Below are positions 3,038 to 55,931 of a stretch of DNA of 64,000 bases, piece after piece. The notes under the pieces were generated by a model that was not told the DNA's origin, did not search any database, and saw nothing but the letters and a program-made list of their open reading frames with translations. The position numbers and the translations under genes were made by a program. Position 1 is the first letter of the stretch. The number at the start of each line of letters is the position of its first letter. The DNA is taken from sequence record NC_061444.1; one strand, 5' to 3'.

Positions 3038-3781
3038 TTAGAAGAAGTTACTTTCGCAATCATCAAGGCTGCAACGCAGTGCTTGATATGCAGTGATTCG
3101 TTCTTCCGTTAGATTGATATACTTATCATCAATATTGTACTTCACTCGGACAGGAACATTGTACCCGTCGAGTAGGCCGTGTCGTTGATACACTTCAAGG
3201 CGAAGTACCGGTGCGCTGACCTGTCCGTGTTCCATGATGTTCAGGTCAATTTTGTCGGCGTAGATGAACGGACGCTCTCTGTTACACAAGATGTAGTCTA
3301 TCTCATGCAAATTAAAGAGTGTGAAATTCATATAGCCAATAATGAACTCCGCAATCAGCCTAAATGTCTCCGACATGTCAGACCGAAACTGTTGTGTGAG
3401 AATCAGGTCAACGTGCGGTCGTATCGCTACGCGCATGTCATACCAACTCTCACAGAACAGCGCTGGGAAGTCTTCAGGGTGATGAGCCATAAGGCCCAAC
3501 ACATCATTTTCCGTATCTGCGAAAGAGCTTAGGATTTCAGTGGCATCCTCATCTGTCTGAATGCCACAGCCAGTTGAAATAAAACGACGCTCAATGTCTC
3601 TCAACCAAGACTCTGATGCAGATAGGTATTGAAGCAGTGTTTCTCTTGCGGCAGCCGTGAACTCATGCCTGGTAGAGTCAAGGACTTCTCCAAGCATAAA
3701 GGCTTTCGCTTTGTAGAAATCACTATAGCGTTCGGCAGTAAACCGTCTGAACCCTATGTTATTCTTCAAATAGCCCATCAT
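3038..3781 (-). CDS. Hypothetical protein (247 aa)
   Basis: Long ORF overlapping the upstream stop; no recognised motif. Confidence 0.7.
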   Translation of the reverse strand: MMGYLKNNIGFRRFTAERYSDFYKAKAFMLGEVLDSTRHEFTAAARETLLQYLSASESWLRDIERRFISTGCGIQTDEDATEILSSFADTENDVLGLMAHHPEDFPALFCESWYDMRVAIRPHVDLILTQQFRSDMSETFRLIAEFIIGYMNFTLFNLHEIDYILCNRERPFIYADKIDLNIMEHGQVSAPVLRLEVYQRHGLLDGYNVPVRVKYNIDDKYINLTEERITAYQALRCSLDDCESNFF

Positions 3782-5667: not shown

Positions 5668-6365
5668 AGGACTTCTCCTCTCTCGTCAGTGACGTAAGGA
5701 ATGCCTGCCCCTTTGCCCAATCCATGACGCAAAGCCCATACTGTGTCGGCATTCTCTTGCACAAACACAAGCCCTTTAACCGTTGCCTCGCCAGTCGCGT
5801 TTTCCAGTGCAGTGACGCGCGAAGTAAGTAACTGTGCGTCAGACTGAATAGTTCGAATCGCAGCGAGGTTCGAGTTAACGCGCTGGTTCATGTTGTTAAA
5901 CATGGTGAAGAACGAGTTGTTCATCGCCGTGCGAACGCCGTCCGTATAGGACTTAGGAATCAGCTCATCGTTGTCAAACGTTGTCACGCCTGTACGAACG
6001 AGAACTTTACCGGTAAGACGTCCACCACTTGCGCTGATAATCTGAGGCGCTGGCAAATCAGCTTCGTCCCAGACTTGAACAGTGGTCATCACCGTGTTGT
6101 AGTCAGTCTCTTCCTGCCACGTATTTTTGTACGGAGCAGTAGCAGTCTTAGACTTACGGCGCAGAACTTTTTTATAGTTAGCGCTCGTGCCGTCTGCGAT
6201 AATCCAGAGACCGTTCAGTGGAAAGACATGCGTAACAGGTTCGGCGAACGCTAAGATGATCATAACGTCTGCGCTTACCTTGTACACGATATTGTTCGAC
6301 GCTGACAGACCTTGCTGCTGGGCAAGACTAATCAACGTGTCCACGTAGTTAGTCAACTGGCTCAT
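5541..6365 (-). CDS. Virion structural protein with C-terminal W-x-x-x-HGLG domain
   Basis: 274 aa; short coiled coil then VWALRHGLG...EVLWP domain paralogous to 723..1319. Confidence 0.7.
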   Translation of the reverse strand: MSQLTNYVDTLISLAQQQGLSASNNIVYKVSADVMIILAFAEPVTHVFPLNGLWIIADGTSANYKKVLRRKSKTATAPYKNTWQEETDYNTVMTTVQVWDEADLPAPQIISASGGRLTGKVLVRTGVTTFDNDELIPKSYTDGVRTAMNNSFFTMFNNMNQRVNSNLAAIRTIQSDAQLLTSRVTALENATGEATVKGLVFVQENADTVWALRHGLGKGAGIPYVTDERGEVLWPETVNPAEADPDNVLLLTFLEPVSGVAQLMYMPISETTPQ

Positions 6366-23812: not shown

Positions 23813-24235
23813 TTACTGTGCCCTCATTGCAAACGTAATGGATTGTTTGTCTTCGAGCTTAGGACAACGCCATGTGATTACACACACGTAGGTCTGCTCG
23901 TATTGTTCGCTCATGGTACACGCTGTCTGCACACCAGTTACATCTTGCGTCAGACCATTGTATGGGTCTTCGAGTGCGAGGCGCATGTACGTTGCAATCC
24001 AGTCTGCTGTAGTCTGGTCGAACGGTTCAAAGAGATATTGATACACGTCTGCACCGAAGTTCTCACGCCACTTACGGGACTTCTTGCGCGTACCAATTAC
24101 CATCAGAATCTTCTGGACAATGCTGTCCATGTTCTGAACGTTATCGCGGGGTTCGAGTTGAATCCACGCATTGATATCACAATAGATGCGCTCACTAGTG
24201 GGCACGTCTATCAGTCGAACTCCGATTCCTGCCAT
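23813..24235 (-). CDS. Baseplate wedge subunit, gp25-like
   Basis: 140 aa; IVQKILMVIGTRKKSRKWRENFGADVYQYLFEP fits the gp25 signature. Confidence 0.85.
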   Translation of the reverse strand: MAGIGVRLIDVPTSERIYCDINAWIQLEPRDNVQNMDSIVQKILMVIGTRKKSRKWRENFGADVYQYLFEPFDQTTADWIATYMRLALEDPYNGLTQDVTGVQTACTMSEQYEQTYVCVITWRCPKLEDKQSITFAMRAQ

Positions 24236-24525
24236 TAGCCAAATCTCACGTTAGAGCTGCCGTTAGAAGCAGTGTCACCACAACTGTTTGGGTCACCAGC
24301 TCGCTGGGCAGGCTTGCCATTGACACGCACACTGGAGCCTGAGATAGCTGTACCTGTATGAGGTGGCTTCTTCGGTTTCCAATGTGGCTTGTACTTATCG
24401 CCGTTACGAACACTGCCTTTGCCATTCACGAACACGTTAGACGATGCTTGTGCCGGAACAACAGGGAAGTAACCGTTATGTCCAGTAGAAAGGTCAGTGC
24501 CTAGACGAATAGCTTTCTGTCCCAT
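24235..24525 (-). CDS. PAAR spike-tip protein (T4 gp5.4-like)
   Basis: MGQKAIRLGTDLSTGH...VFVNGKGSVRNGD...VRVNGKPAQRAGD; ATG at 24525 with AGAGGAGA RBS. Confidence 0.9.
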   Translation of the reverse strand: MGQKAIRLGTDLSTGHNGYFPVVPAQASSNVFVNGKGSVRNGDKYKPHWKPKKPPHTGTAISGSSVRVNGKPAQRAGDPNSCGDTASNGSSNVRFG

Positions 24526-24575
24526 GATATTCTCCTCTGTTAGGCACAAATTAGCTTGTTATGCAGTAGAAACGA

Positions 24576-24604
24576 AAACGGGCGACCCGAAGGCCACCCG
24601 CTTT
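24576..24604 (-). terminator. Rho-independent terminator of the small structured RNA
   Basis: Minus strand GCGGGTGGCC-TTCG-GGTCGCCCGT-TTTCGTTTCT. Confidence 0.85.
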
Positions 24605-24804
24605 CTATGCTTGGATTTGTGTCGCTTACTCCCTCACACCCGAAGCGAGTGCCCGGTAGCCGAAGCTACTAAGCTGGAGTGACTGACCGAGAGTGAAGCC
24701 GCATCAAACGGCAACTGTAAGTGACTCTCGGAACATGATAGCAAACGACCAAGCATCGCAATTGCTATCAGCGACACGTAGAACAAAATCATGTTTGCTC
24801 CTTG
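24605..24804 (-). ncRNA. Putative compact multi-stem, pseudoknotted RNA of unknown class
   Basis: Three perfect 8-bp stems (GTGTCGCT/AGCGACAC, GATAGCAA/TTGCTATC, CCGAGAGT/ACTCTCGG), a cUUCGg hairpin, an 8-bp loop-to-tail pairing (ATGCTTGG/CCAAGCAT), own promoter and terminator; G.U pairs favour the minus strand. Confidence 0.7.
24634..24792 (-). CDS. Possible 52-aa hydrophobic peptide encoded inside the structured RNA
   Basis: AAGGAG RBS 5 nt before ATG; MILFYVSLIAIAMLGRLLSCSESHLQLPFDAASLSVSHSSLVASATGHSLRV; below the ORF-track length cut-off. Confidence 0.35.
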   Translation of the reverse strand: MILFYVSLIAIAMLGRLLSCSESHLQLPFDAASLSVSHSSLVASATGHSLRV

Positions 24805-24811
24805 TGTCTCT

Positions 24812-24840
24812 ACTGTAAGTAAAACATTTGCAAATGTCGA
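24812..24840 (-). promoter_or_regulatory. Sigma70-like promoter with a 14-bp palindrome across the spacer
   Basis: TCGACA-N17-TACAGT on the minus strand; perfect palindrome ACATTTGCAAATGT at 24824-24837. Confidence 0.55.
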
Positions 24841-24849
24841 TCAAGTTAC

Positions 24850-25810
24850 TTCGAGTTGCCCTTCGCCCAACATCACTAGGGTTTCAACTCTCTTTCTCTC
24901 TTTACCGCCTGGGCTGCGGAAACCGCACACAAGAACAACACATCAAGGACACACGGCGGAAAAGTGAAAAAGTTCCGTATGCCCTAACAGCATCGCTCAA
25001 GCGAAGGAGGTGACCCATCGGTGATCTGCGGTGGTTGATACACTCTTTAACAATCGCTCTTGTTGTGCATTAGATCGTGGTAGGAACGCGATTGACCGCT
25101 AACAAGTCCTATACGATATTTCACTACCCGGAAAAGTGGGCAAGCTATGGCAGCACGTCAACGGCAGCATGGCGCGGACACACTCCATTGAACATTGTTA
25201 AGGGCAATGCTCAACAGGCTGTGTACAGCTTTGACCAAACGCAGAGTCGCTCGTCGCCCAACATCACTTGAGTATCTCGTCTACGTTCTTTTACTCCCTA
25301 GATACCGTGAAAAGGCACGGCACCCATGAGGGTCGCGGATGTTTATCACATTAAGACTCTTACAGTTCAATCCTGTACGCAGTGTGTTGAGTCGTCCGCT
25401 GGATGACACACTACATACCCTCACCGTGTTGTACATCGGTAGGAAAGAGCTGGTGGAATTGTCATGGAGAGTAGATATCTCCCCAATGCACACTGTTATT
25501 GCCAGCCAGTGTGCATCAGGCAGCGTAACTGCGAACTGCTGTCCCTAAAAGAGTGGCCACAACGCTGAGAATACGTTCTACCAGTCTACGTGCCTAGAGG
25601 CTGCTGCCGTGCTATGTCGTAAAGATGAAAAGAACTGGGCCTTGTGGGCGTCAGCGGCAGAGCAACAGTCTATCACGTGGGTGCCGGGGTTGTCCTCACG
25701 ATTACAGAGCATAAGCTCAAACCGGCTGGAGGCTCACATGCCGCCAAGAAATACAGCGCGTGAGTTTATGGACCAGCAAGAGACTGCCCGCGAAGTAAGT
25801 CTCTTGCTAC
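24850..25810 (+). ncRNA. Putative large (~950 nt) structured RNA of unknown class
   Basis: No convincing CDS; more than a dozen hairpins and long-range helices, including 10- and 11-bp perfect stems; G.U pairs mostly favour the plus strand. Confidence 0.55.
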
Positions 25811-25848
25811 AACTTGATATTACTATCTGCAATTTTTATTTACAGATT

Positions 25849-27612
25849 TTAAAACGCTTTACGTTCGATATTCGAATATAAAGTTTCATACGGCTCAGAG
25901 TACAGTTCAGGACCGCGTTGAGCGCGTACAGTCACGTAACCAGTGTGACGGTTGAAGTCAGTGATTTCGACTGTAGGCTGTTTAGGCTTGAGAGTCGCAT
26001 AAATAGGAGCGTTCAGAGTTGGTTCGTCTGTCTGAATCTTATTTACAGATTGCAGAGCAGCGCCTGAAAGCGTAGGCAGCTTGAATCGCAGTTCAGCACG
26101 TTTCTGTCCGAACGCTGCGCGAATCATACCGTTTTCCAGCTTCACACCGTTCTGCTTGAGATATGCAGCGATGCGACGACCGATACCCGTAAGCTGATCG
26201 CGAGTGCGTGGGTCGAACGTACCTTCGAAGCTGATTGCTTCTTCCGGTTGACGTACAGACAGATGCAGACCTGTGTTGAAGTAACCTTCGGTCAGAAGAC
26301 GAAGCACTTCTTTGACAACCTCTTTCGTGTTCTGATTGATAGCAGCAACACGCAGCTCAGGCACGTCTACTTTGATCGGGTCACGCAGTTCGGTCTGGTT
26401 GTCCATGTAGCCGAGTGAAATGTGTTTCGCATTGGCATACGTATGCTGCAACACACCAGTAGCGCGAATCAACACAGAGCCGCCTTTAGCGAGGTCATAC
26501 AGTTCATCGCTGGTGGTTGTGCTGAACAGATAGTAGTCTGTAGGCACTGCCATGCGATTAACAGCTTCAACCGCTTTCGTCTGCGCTTCTTTCACAGTCT
26601 TACCGAAGACAACACGACTACGGTTAGGCTGAGAGGCAGACACAGGGAAGAACGCACCGTAAACAGCCTGCACGTTTTTCTTAATAGGCTGATCAGAAGC
26701 AATCTTCTTACCGCCAGCGAGCGGAGGCAGCTTAACGCCCACCAGCTTACCTTTGACGATATGCTTGTTTTCTTTAACAGGCTTGAGACTGTCGATCAGC
26801 TTAGACAGTGACGCACCATCGAGAATCTTCTCAAGCGGAACAACAAGGTTCTGCGGCAGATAGTGTTTCTTGCGATACGTGTAGATAACGGTGTCTTTCT
26901 TGACCTGCAAAGGCGTAGCCATATTGCGACCAACAACACCGACAGGCTGGAACGTGTTTGCTCTGTCGTTAGCGATTGAGCCAAACTGTTTAGTGAACTC
27001 AGTCTGACCGATGATGTTAGCGACACGCAGATGACCACGAACGATAAACACAATCTTCGGTTCATCTTTCAGGCGCAACTCGTAGCGGTCACGGTTCAGA
27101 TAAACCAGGCTGTACTTGTCGCCCTTCTCCAGCTCAAGGTCATACTCGTCGTTAGCGTCATCGACAACGACTTTCTTACCCTGATACGTAGCGTAAGTGC
27201 GAGCACCGGCAGACTCAGAAGCGATCTGCATTGCCTTACCGGTATTAGATAGCGATGCAGCGAAGTCACGCACGGCTGGCATCAGGTCGAATGAAGACGC
27301 TACAGAATACGGTTCGCGCTTATCGCCAAGATGCAGATGCACGGCGCTTGTGCTGGACATGAAGACTGTTGTACCTACATCTTCGTGCTTACCAGCAAAG
27401 TTCAGGCCGCTGATACGTTCGATGGTATTCGCATTCAGTGATTCGAAGCGTACATCGCTACCAGCAGCGAAGTCAAAGATTTCACCGTGACGCCAAGCAT
27501 AGGCAACGTTGCTGGAGCTAAGGCCAACAAACGCATCGCCAATTCGGCTGACGGTTAACGGCATGATACTCAGATCACGAATGATCGAGGACTGCTTTTT
27601 AATGAGGTTCAT
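25849..27612 (-). CDS. Hypothetical protein, candidate internal head protein (587 aa)
   Basis: Contains the ~65-aa domain shared with three other ORFs (TYATYQGKKV...KGDKYSL), preceded by SES-A. Confidence 0.7.
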   Translation of the reverse strand: MNLIKKQSSIIRDLSIMPLTVSRIGDAFVGLSSSNVAYAWRHGEIFDFAAGSDVRFESLNANTIERISGLNFAGKHEDVGTTVFMSSTSAVHLHLGDKREPYSVASSFDLMPAVRDFAASLSNTGKAMQIASESAGARTYATYQGKKVVVDDANDEYDLELEKGDKYSLVYLNRDRYELRLKDEPKIVFIVRGHLRVANIIGQTEFTKQFGSIANDRANTFQPVGVVGRNMATPLQVKKDTVIYTYRKKHYLPQNLVVPLEKILDGASLSKLIDSLKPVKENKHIVKGKLVGVKLPPLAGGKKIASDQPIKKNVQAVYGAFFPVSASQPNRSRVVFGKTVKEAQTKAVEAVNRMAVPTDYYLFSTTTSDELYDLAKGGSVLIRATGVLQHTYANAKHISLGYMDNQTELRDPIKVDVPELRVAAINQNTKEVVKEVLRLLTEGYFNTGLHLSVRQPEEAISFEGTFDPRTRDQLTGIGRRIAAYLKQNGVKLENGMIRAAFGQKRAELRFKLPTLSGAALQSVNKIQTDEPTLNAPIYATLKPKQPTVEITDFNRHTGYVTVRAQRGPELYSEPYETLYSNIERKAF

Positions 27613-55904: not shown

Positions 55905-55931
55905 TCGTCATTAACACTGGTATTTACAGTG

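Follow-up and report, generated by a model that had tools for sequence, protein, structure and literature searches.

Which product, if any, is encoded in the 1323 nucleotides (nt), poor in open reading frames (ORFs), that separate two baseplate-region genes of the Erwinia amylovora jumbo phage pEa_SNUABM_32 (Alexandravirus, 266 kb)? This gap occupies positions 24526-25848 of the window, by which we mean the whole stretch of 64,000 nt (64 kb) analysed from sequence record NC_061444.1 (record coordinate = window coordinate + 62000), and it holds the stretch 24850-25810, for which an earlier note had proposed a structured RNA of ~950 nt, transcribed on the plus strand against the genes and reminiscent of the RNAs ROOL and GOLLD in size and nested domains. 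In this study we observed that a large, multi-domain structured RNA is strongly supported at this locus, as its covariation exceeds that of the controls, but that it lies on the minus strand in the same direction as its neighbours and measures ~1280 nt, from 25847 to 24568, with a small conserved ORF at its 3' end. The structure is conserved, sequence signals mark both ends, the ORF bears a coding signature, and the element is spread across several phage genera.

We read the gap, with a probability of about 0.6, as one structured-RNA transcription unit that ends in a peptide ORF; a stand-alone role of its RNA is the more tentative part of this reading. The proposed unit (24568..25847, minus strand) would be transcribed as a single molecule of ~1.28 kb that begins at the conserved 5' motif and runs through the terminator to the end of its U-tail. 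Its first ~1.05 kb would form a non-coding RNA of several domains, in which multi-way junctions and duplicated modules are combined with at least one pseudoknot and with conserved stretches of single strand. In its last ~0.2 kb, an ORF of 52 codons would encode a small membrane peptide, and a hairpin buries the Shine-Dalgarno sequence (SD) and the start codon of this ORF. The transcript would probably be late, made alongside the baseplate genes.

Covariation and strand of the structured RNA

The structure was evaluated on an alignment (A3) of 14 non-redundant full-length lineages, equivalent to ~9 effectively independent ones, which was trimmed from the 5' block to the terminator and in which the element is 1208-1309 nt long. 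RNAalifold predicted 297 pairs on this alignment, and 147 of them keep their pairing through two-sided changes. With RIBOSUM scoring, the minus sense gave 356 pairs with 94.6% canonical cells, 166 double-changed pairs and -593 kcal/mol; on the plus strand the values were 327 pairs, 150 double changes and -483 kcal/mol. The coding sequence of the neighbouring gene gp118, which has a similar divergence and the same phylogeny, served as control in the same 14 genomes and the same pipeline, and yielded 59 double-changed pairs in sense and 53 in antisense (-417 and -410 kcal/mol), while sliding the 3' partners by 1-3 columns left 40-56 double-changed pairs and 35-42% pairing. Compensation is therefore beyond what the controls produce. 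Tolerance of G·U pairs is also strand-specific, as in the pairs predicted on both strands 156 cells are G·U on the minus strand only, against 51 on the plus strand only. The ratio of G·U to A·C cells is ~3:1 to 7:1, and several long helices hold 47-53 G·U cells with 0-1 A·C cells.

Covariance models were built from three modules (R1, R2 and R3, all on the minus strand), with 500 shuffles and slid partners as controls. Module 1 (25731-25586) is 96.4% paired with two-sided changes at 26/36 pairs, where the shuffles gave 9.0±2.0 (0/500) and the slid partners ≤9; module 2 (25334-25173) is 94.7% paired with 18/27 (shuffles 7.9±1.6, 0/500; slid ≤8), and module 3 (25035-24898) is 98.9% paired with 22/32 (shuffles 10.4±1.5, 0/500; slid ≤7). 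The environmental contig L034, which stood outside the training of the models, matched module 1 with 95 bits and module 3, cut by the contig end, with 35 bits. An energy-free scan, on the other side, left most 4-bp long-range helix candidates at chance level with so few lineages.

The strand of the RNA is the minus strand, co-directional with the neighbouring genes, because the alifold energy, the G·U asymmetry, the per-module folding z-scores (-1.1, -2.8, -2.3 and -3.1 on the minus strand; -0.6, +0.2, -1.0 and -1.8 on the plus strand) and an intrinsic terminator on that strand all favour it. Folding of the whole stretch 24850-25810 (961 nt) against 20 dinucleotide shuffles per strand gave z-scores of -2.5 for plus and -2.2 for minus; folding is better than that of shuffles, as had been anticipated, though this test cannot choose the strand since both strands beat their shuffles. 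The originally proposed plus-strand RNA of ~950 nt, a relative of ROOL or GOLLD running against the genes, draws on the strand symmetry of Watson-Crick helices, and the plus strand does fold and does show its 150 double-changed pairs. It is nonetheless highly improbable, as the minus strand is better on every strand-sensitive measure, the terminator and the small ORF lie on the minus strand, no match to ROOL or GOLLD was obtained, and gp117, the annotated plus-strand ORF in the gap, is broken in relatives.

The same data bear on whether the gap might hold no RNA at all, being instead a remnant of decayed protein genes or an element acting as DNA, such as an origin, a pac site or cruciforms. 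Distant genera do have real small genes in the equivalent gap, which would suit decay. However, tblastn with 33 small proteins reached the 3' small ORF only, with nothing significant in the 1-kb structured part, the length of the element is tightly conserved, and the compensatory changes, together with the strong asymmetry of G·U over A·C, indicate selection on a single-stranded molecule of minus sense. We regard this explanation as extremely improbable.

Architecture of the folded RNA

The non-coding structured part of ~1.05 kb contains ~46 helices of at least 3 bp, and its features are described here from 5' to 3' on the minus strand. At its beginning stands a variable hairpin (25775..25808), the 11-bp helix of the earlier note, in which the hairpin is kept but the sequence is not (9 double-changed pairs, many mismatches). 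Module 1, the best-conserved domain, is a three-way junction with a long bent helix, and includes the helix 25678-25656/25613-25588 (21 bp, 12 covarying); the helix 25587-25574/25564-25550 (13 bp, 8 covarying) adjoins it. Further on lie the hairpin 25482..25520, an extension of the ATGCACACTG/CAGTGTGCAT pairing (25519-25508/25494-25483, 12-13 bp) that is 99% canonical with 49 G·U and 0 A·C cells, and the hairpin 25417-25406/25387-25376 (12 bp, 11 covarying). The loop of the latter hairpin, GCGGA (25399-25395), forms a pseudoknot with UCCGC (25339-25335), which is backed by two independent compensatory events, namely GCGGG/CCCGC in SNUABM_45 and GCAGG/CCUGC in L037.

Module 2 comprises a junction, the first copy of a repeated hairpin and a 13-bp hairpin at 25217-25185 (helix 25217-25205/25197-25185, 8 covarying), with the helix 25288-25278/25249-25237 (11 bp, 9 covarying) and, beyond the module, the helix 25117-25107/25085-25074 (10 bp, 7 covarying). 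Module 3 consists of the closing helices 25022-25014/24913-24904, a long helix, a GCGG/CCGC hairpin and the unpaired segment UCACCUCCUU; its helices 25003-24990/24941-24928 (12 bp) and 24985-24975/24956-24946 (11 bp) have 8 and 7 covarying pairs, respectively. The repeated hairpin, with the loop AGUGAUGUUGGGCGA and G-GUAAA(A)GA ahead of it, is found at ~25297-25240 (loop motif ~25271-25255) and again at 24905-24853 (loop motif ~24881-24866). In the second copy, the hairpin itself (24853..24890) has 6 bp, 5 of them covarying, and secondary matches of model R2 in relatives fall on it. The three junctions at 25678-25588, 25330-25294 and 25022-24904 are alike as well, each displaying a helix, AU on the 5' strand with AGG on the 3' strand, a second helix and UA(A)AGA. 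This likeness, together with the cross-match of models R1 and R3 at the same site in L045, suggests that the RNA grew by internal duplication.

All eleven helices quoted in the earlier note are present in the sequence, and their conservation across the 14 lineages is mixed: several are kept with compensatory changes, and others are ambiguous or unsupported. The helix at 25381/25412 covaries in 5/5 pairs, that at 25486/25516 shows 4 double changes with 22 G·U cells on the minus strand and 0 on the plus strand, and both TGCGG/CCGCA and GGAGA/TCTCC are kept through compensatory changes, while CATTG/CAATG finds support in its copy at 25193/25205. CCGTG/CACGG and the variable hairpin at 25775/25808 do covary, although in variable and poorly aligned stretches. 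The alignment is ambiguous on CAATCGC/GCGATTG (2 double changes, 24 mismatched cells) and on GTCGTCC/GGATGAC (2 double changes, 12 A·C cells), and the CTTTACCGCC/GGCGGAAAAG helix is not conserved, with 0 double changes and 43 mismatched cells. The long-range helix 25161/25610, which had been thought to close a domain, fails, as a deletion in Y3 and SNUABM_45 covers one arm and the other arm pairs locally with 25665-25661.

The segment UCACCUCCUU (25013-25004) resembles an anti-SD sequence, matching the 3' end of 16S ribosomal RNA (rRNA), its anti-SD tail, at 13/14 positions, and it is invariant and unpaired in the consensus in 13/14 full-length lineages (all except Y3), as well as in the partial L034. 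An rRNA mimic, in which this unpaired copy of the 16S tail would bind Shine-Dalgarno sequences as a sponge, could be built on these features. We give it a very slim chance, because Y3 lacks the segment, JA11 and L045 have not kept it (Yersinia phage fHe-Yen9-02 has CCACCUU), and there is no overall similarity to 16S rRNA. An origin from 16S rRNA was rejected on a Smith-Waterman score of 15, compared with 16.2±2.0 for shuffles, and on the absence of any nhmmer match.

Proposed transcript ends and the small ORF

Directly after the gp118 stop lies the 5' block (25816..25847, minus strand), which is nearly invariant in the close clade, where it is able to form an 8-bp hairpin. Its core, AAATCTGTAAATA-NN-AATT, is common to every lineage examined, including the distant genera, and always stands right after the gp118 homologue; it could serve as a promoter or as a 5'-end element. 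A clear intrinsic terminator stands immediately before the motif in Yoloswag, SNUABM_5 and contig L038, as expected at the start of a new transcription unit. Phages of the 'hairy Myoviridae' or PaBG-related group rely on the RNA polymerase of the host together with sigma factors of their own (PMC7412058, PMC6143709). Elsewhere in the window, a second exact copy of ATCTGTAAATA was noticed at 26040-26050 (minus), within the coding region of gp118 ~190 nt before its stop, and a near copy, CTGTAAATACCAGT, at 55916-55929 (minus), in a short intergenic space 24 nt before a minus-strand gene of 652 aa.

The 3' end displays an intrinsic terminator, such as an independent transcription unit calls for (24605-24574 with a U-tail to 24568, minus strand), composed of a 13-14-bp G+C-rich stem, a UUCG loop and a U-rich tail. 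It sits just upstream of the ribosome-binding site of the following gene, which encodes a PAAR protein. The stem is 100% canonical across the lineages, loop and stem covary, and an nhmmer profile detected the terminator in all the distant gaps.

Between the structured part and the terminator lies the small ORF of 52 codons plus stop (24634..24792, minus strand), which is unannotated in pEa_SNUABM_32 but annotated in SNUABM_17, _35 and _2, and which has homologues in at least 7 lineages. It is translated-looking and predicted to encode a small membrane peptide with a transmembrane-like helix at its N-terminus. The ORF is open in 13/13 parsed lineages at 47-53 aa, counting alternative upstream starts in S17 and AD1, with Y3, which could not be parsed automatically, standing outside this count. 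Its indels all have lengths divisible by three, its hydrophobic helix at the N-terminus is conserved, and synonymous codon changes are visible (e.g., CGT/CGC/CGA/CGG). The 3' half of the ORF overlaps covarying hairpins with UUCG/GNRA-type loops, and as residues shift in step with these hairpins (HSLRV* versus HLHRA*), the C-terminal part of the peptide appears to be constrained by RNA structure. Searches of Pfam, PHROGs and NCBIfam gave the peptide no family assignment, its relatives being confined to this phage group. The SD, AAGGAGC (24803-24797), lies 5 bases upstream of the start codon (24792-24790), and both are enclosed in a conserved hairpin (24773..24808, minus strand).

Distribution among phages

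All Alexandravirus genomes (70-90% identity) retain the gap in the same position and at nearly equal length, as do Sasquatchvirus (Y3), Snuvirus (SNUABM_7/45) and two environmental lineages, L037 at full length and L034 cut by its contig end. Homologues of gp118 at 41-51% identity were found in Salmondvirus (Dickeya phages JA11, JA13, JA29 and JA33), Yoloswagvirus, Rivsvirus (SNUABM_5), Yersinia phage fHe-Yen9-02 and environmental contigs. The annotated distant isolates follow a common order of gp118, the 5' motif, 620-730 nt free of ORFs, several small genes, the peptide ORF with the terminator, and PAAR. Some of these small genes, situated between RNA and terminator, encode transmembrane helices, and homologues of the peptide occur at the same place in JA11, JA29, Yoloswag, SNUABM_5 and environmental contigs.

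Module 1 was recovered in L045 with 34.8 bits (E about 1e-6) and in JA11, JA29 and L039 with 15-17 bits; each match lies on the same strand, 65-70 nt beyond the stop of gp118. Module 2 reached 23.6 bits in JA11, downstream of the module 1 match, and 17.9 bits in SNUABM_5, with a sub-threshold 9.1 bits in Yoloswag, which shares motif and layout, and module 3 reached 25.1 bits in fHe-Yen9-02. Marginal single scores in these distant lineages are made credible by the agreement of their positions, and four more lineages probably carry a shorter, rearranged homologue. A search of 596 Gb of bacterial genomes with a conserved 20-mer of module 1 returned 15 matches, where we estimate ~17 by chance, and the model confirmed none of them; a new viral contig from the same search, L081, was likewise not confirmed by the model.

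Stand-alone RNA or leader

The main rival to a stand-alone role is a giant cis-acting leader, in which the 1-kb structure would serve as the 5' untranslated region that gates or times translation of one or more small membrane proteins, in the style of type I toxins, holins or superinfection exclusion, with no function of its own. This is the main rival because the occluded SD and the constant presence of small ORFs downstream favour it: at least one small ORF always follows the RNA within one unit, the distant genera place several small genes there, some with transmembrane helices, and a conserved hairpin hides the SD and AUG of the 52-codon ORF. The peptide, moreover, is hydrophobic and about the size of Hok. 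We nevertheless consider the leader unlikely. Known cis-regulatory leaders are much smaller and simpler, and we know of none near 1 kb with ~46 helices. Conservation is higher in module 1 than in the small genes after the RNA, whose number varies between genera, SNUABM_3 and SNUABM_45 lose the SD although they keep the RNA, and no toxin family match and no antisense RNA were found.

A stand-alone role is favoured over the leader for two reasons, namely this better conservation of module 1 compared with the variable small genes, and the company in which the RNA would stand, as every RNA of comparable complexity known to us is a ribozyme, the core of a ribonucleoprotein (RNP) or an 'ornate' RNA, and none is a leader. 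That the 1-kb fold would itself act as an architectural or RNP-type RNA of the OLE, GOLLD or ROOL sort, in a dual-function transcript that delivers the peptide as well, has in our estimate slightly less than an even chance.

Several observations weigh against a stand-alone transcription unit. The RNA could be a mere part of a read-through polycistronic message, and the invariable small ORF downstream fits a leader role equally well. The comparative evidence comes from only about 9 effectively independent lineages, and homology in the distant genera rests on marginal scores backed by position. The 5' motif has no sigma-70 consensus, a sigma-70 promoter scan not rising above shuffle expectation, and it is rare, as the minus strand of the window holds 4 copies, 2 of them intergenic. 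With only these four copies in 64 kb a general phage promoter is unsupported, and we take the motif for a locus-specific signal. The short public and metagenomic contigs that carry the locus, finally, represent DNA and not transcripts, since they run into the flanking genes.

Comparison with known RNAs

Rfam gave no family match to the whole window at the gathering score, and at E≤10 both strands of 24300-26100 returned only three chance microRNA-like matches on one hairpin. The supposed kinship with ROOL and GOLLD falls at either threshold, and no covariance model of ROOL, GOLLD, OLE, HEARO, group I/II introns or known ribozymes matched. Transfer RNA (tRNA) and transfer-messenger RNA (tmRNA) are likewise set aside, as an ARAGORN scan of the window found 0 tRNA and no tmRNA. 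A self-splicing intron, another ribozyme or the remnant of a mobile RNA would be in keeping with the size and complexity of the element, which are in the range of group I/II introns, and phages do carry introns. Such an identity is very unlikely, however, as no Rfam intron or ribozyme matched even at E≤10, the element sits between two complete genes, each with its own stop, SD and start, in all lineages, and it holds a fixed position with no sign of mobility, and a limited test did not find it in bacterial genomes.

Large RNAs of this kind remain the closest points of reference. GOLLD and ROOL have a size of roughly 0.6-0.8 kb, smaller than the ~1.05-1.28 kb of the phage RNA, and ROOL is frequently found near tRNA genes or prophages in Firmicutes and relatives. 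Like the phage RNA they are large, ornate and multi-domain, often associated with phages or prophages, and rich in covariation. They differ in that the phage RNA matches them neither in sequence nor in structure and is fused to a small ORF; it belongs, moreover, to lytic jumbo phages of Enterobacterales, has genes of the baseplate region on both sides and stands in a 64-kb window devoid of tRNA. Assembly of ROOL and GOLLD into homo-oligomeric cages has been demonstrated by cryo-EM (PMC12286853).

With regard to RNAs linked to small membrane peptides, three systems deserve comparison. OLE is a large structured bacterial non-coding RNA that forms a membrane-associated RNP, and the phage transcript resembles it in that it also encodes a predicted membrane peptide, but it has no Rfam match and other hosts and gene partners. 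RNAIII of Staphylococcus is a highly structured dual-function RNA encoding delta-haemolysin, a small membrane-active peptide; its sequence is unrelated, the phage RNA exceeds it 2.5-fold in length, and nothing pointing to base-pairing targets was found for the latter. The hok/sok-like mRNAs of type I toxins share a peptide of ~50 aa with an N-terminal transmembrane helix, a structured mRNA and an SD sequestered in a stem, whereas their leader is ~0.1-0.2 kb against ~1 kb here, and in the phage locus no family match and no antisense RNA were identified.

To our knowledge, few bacterial or phage RNAs are this large and complex, namely rRNA, RNase P, group I/II introns, tmRNA, OLE, GOLLD, ROOL and omega-RNAs, and each of them has revealed new biochemistry or stays an open puzzle. 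We tentatively propose, as a possibility short of probable, that the element represents a new class of ornate phage RNAs of giant size (>1 kb), which would act in late infection as a folded machine or a scaffold, either self-assembling or as the core of an RNP. If so, the class would be conserved across the lineage of 'hairy' jumbo phages of Erwinia, Dickeya and Yersinia, might have roles in virion or baseplate morphogenesis or in host takeover, and would be among the largest structured non-ribosomal RNAs that we know of in any phage. Even with a modest set of genomes the phage RNA shows unusually clean covariation, and it occurs in cultivable lytic phages with tractable hosts. We found no description of the element in the literature; a 2023 survey of viral structured RNAs, whose motifs average 67 nt, may hold fragments of it.

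Neighbouring genes and annotation

The gap is flanked by the PAAR baseplate-spike gene (24235-24525, minus strand) on one side and by gp118 (25849-27612, minus strand, 587 aa) on the other, and the stop of gp118 and the SD and ATG of PAAR leave each gene complete in all lineages. Downstream of the gap, the minus strand encodes PAAR, gp25-like and gp6-like baseplate wedge proteins and a tail protein. In gp118, the constant neighbour of the RNA, a KMPT-N domain (PF20294, aa 139-201) is the only assignment, a sequence search against the PDB gave no match, and its AlphaFold model, which is of low confidence (predicted local distance difference test, pLDDT, 64), found no fold match in the PDB (best E 0.03, TM-score ≤0.11).

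The sole annotated feature inside the gap is gp117, a plus-strand ORF of 47 aa (25738-25881) that overlaps the 5' part of the RNA and the end of gp118; stop codons interrupt its frame in most relatives, so that the gene call is probably spurious. A plus-strand ORF of 158 aa annotated in SNUABM_22, _18 and _28 is likewise restricted to that clade. In the relatives the gap mostly bears no annotation, and the occasional small ORF calls disagree between genomes. The present results correct the annotation in more than 40 phage genomes, in which one plus-strand gene is spurious and two genes, for the small membrane peptide and for the RNA, were missed.

Some minor variations of the locus were also noticed. 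An extra insert of ~125 nt between the terminator and PAAR occurs in AD1 (L006, 1872-2000), L007, L008 and L037; it holds an ORF of ~40 aa, annotated in SNUABM_33 and SNUABM_3, and is lacking in the window. Between the gp118 stop and the 5' motif, a tiny ORF ending in ...GEG* is present in SNUABM_22 (L009, ~3323-3399, 20 codons) and L034 (5271-5309, 8 codons), which are two separate lineages. The only other large gap of the window, at 5668-6348, comprises 681 nt with no ORF of at least 60 aa.

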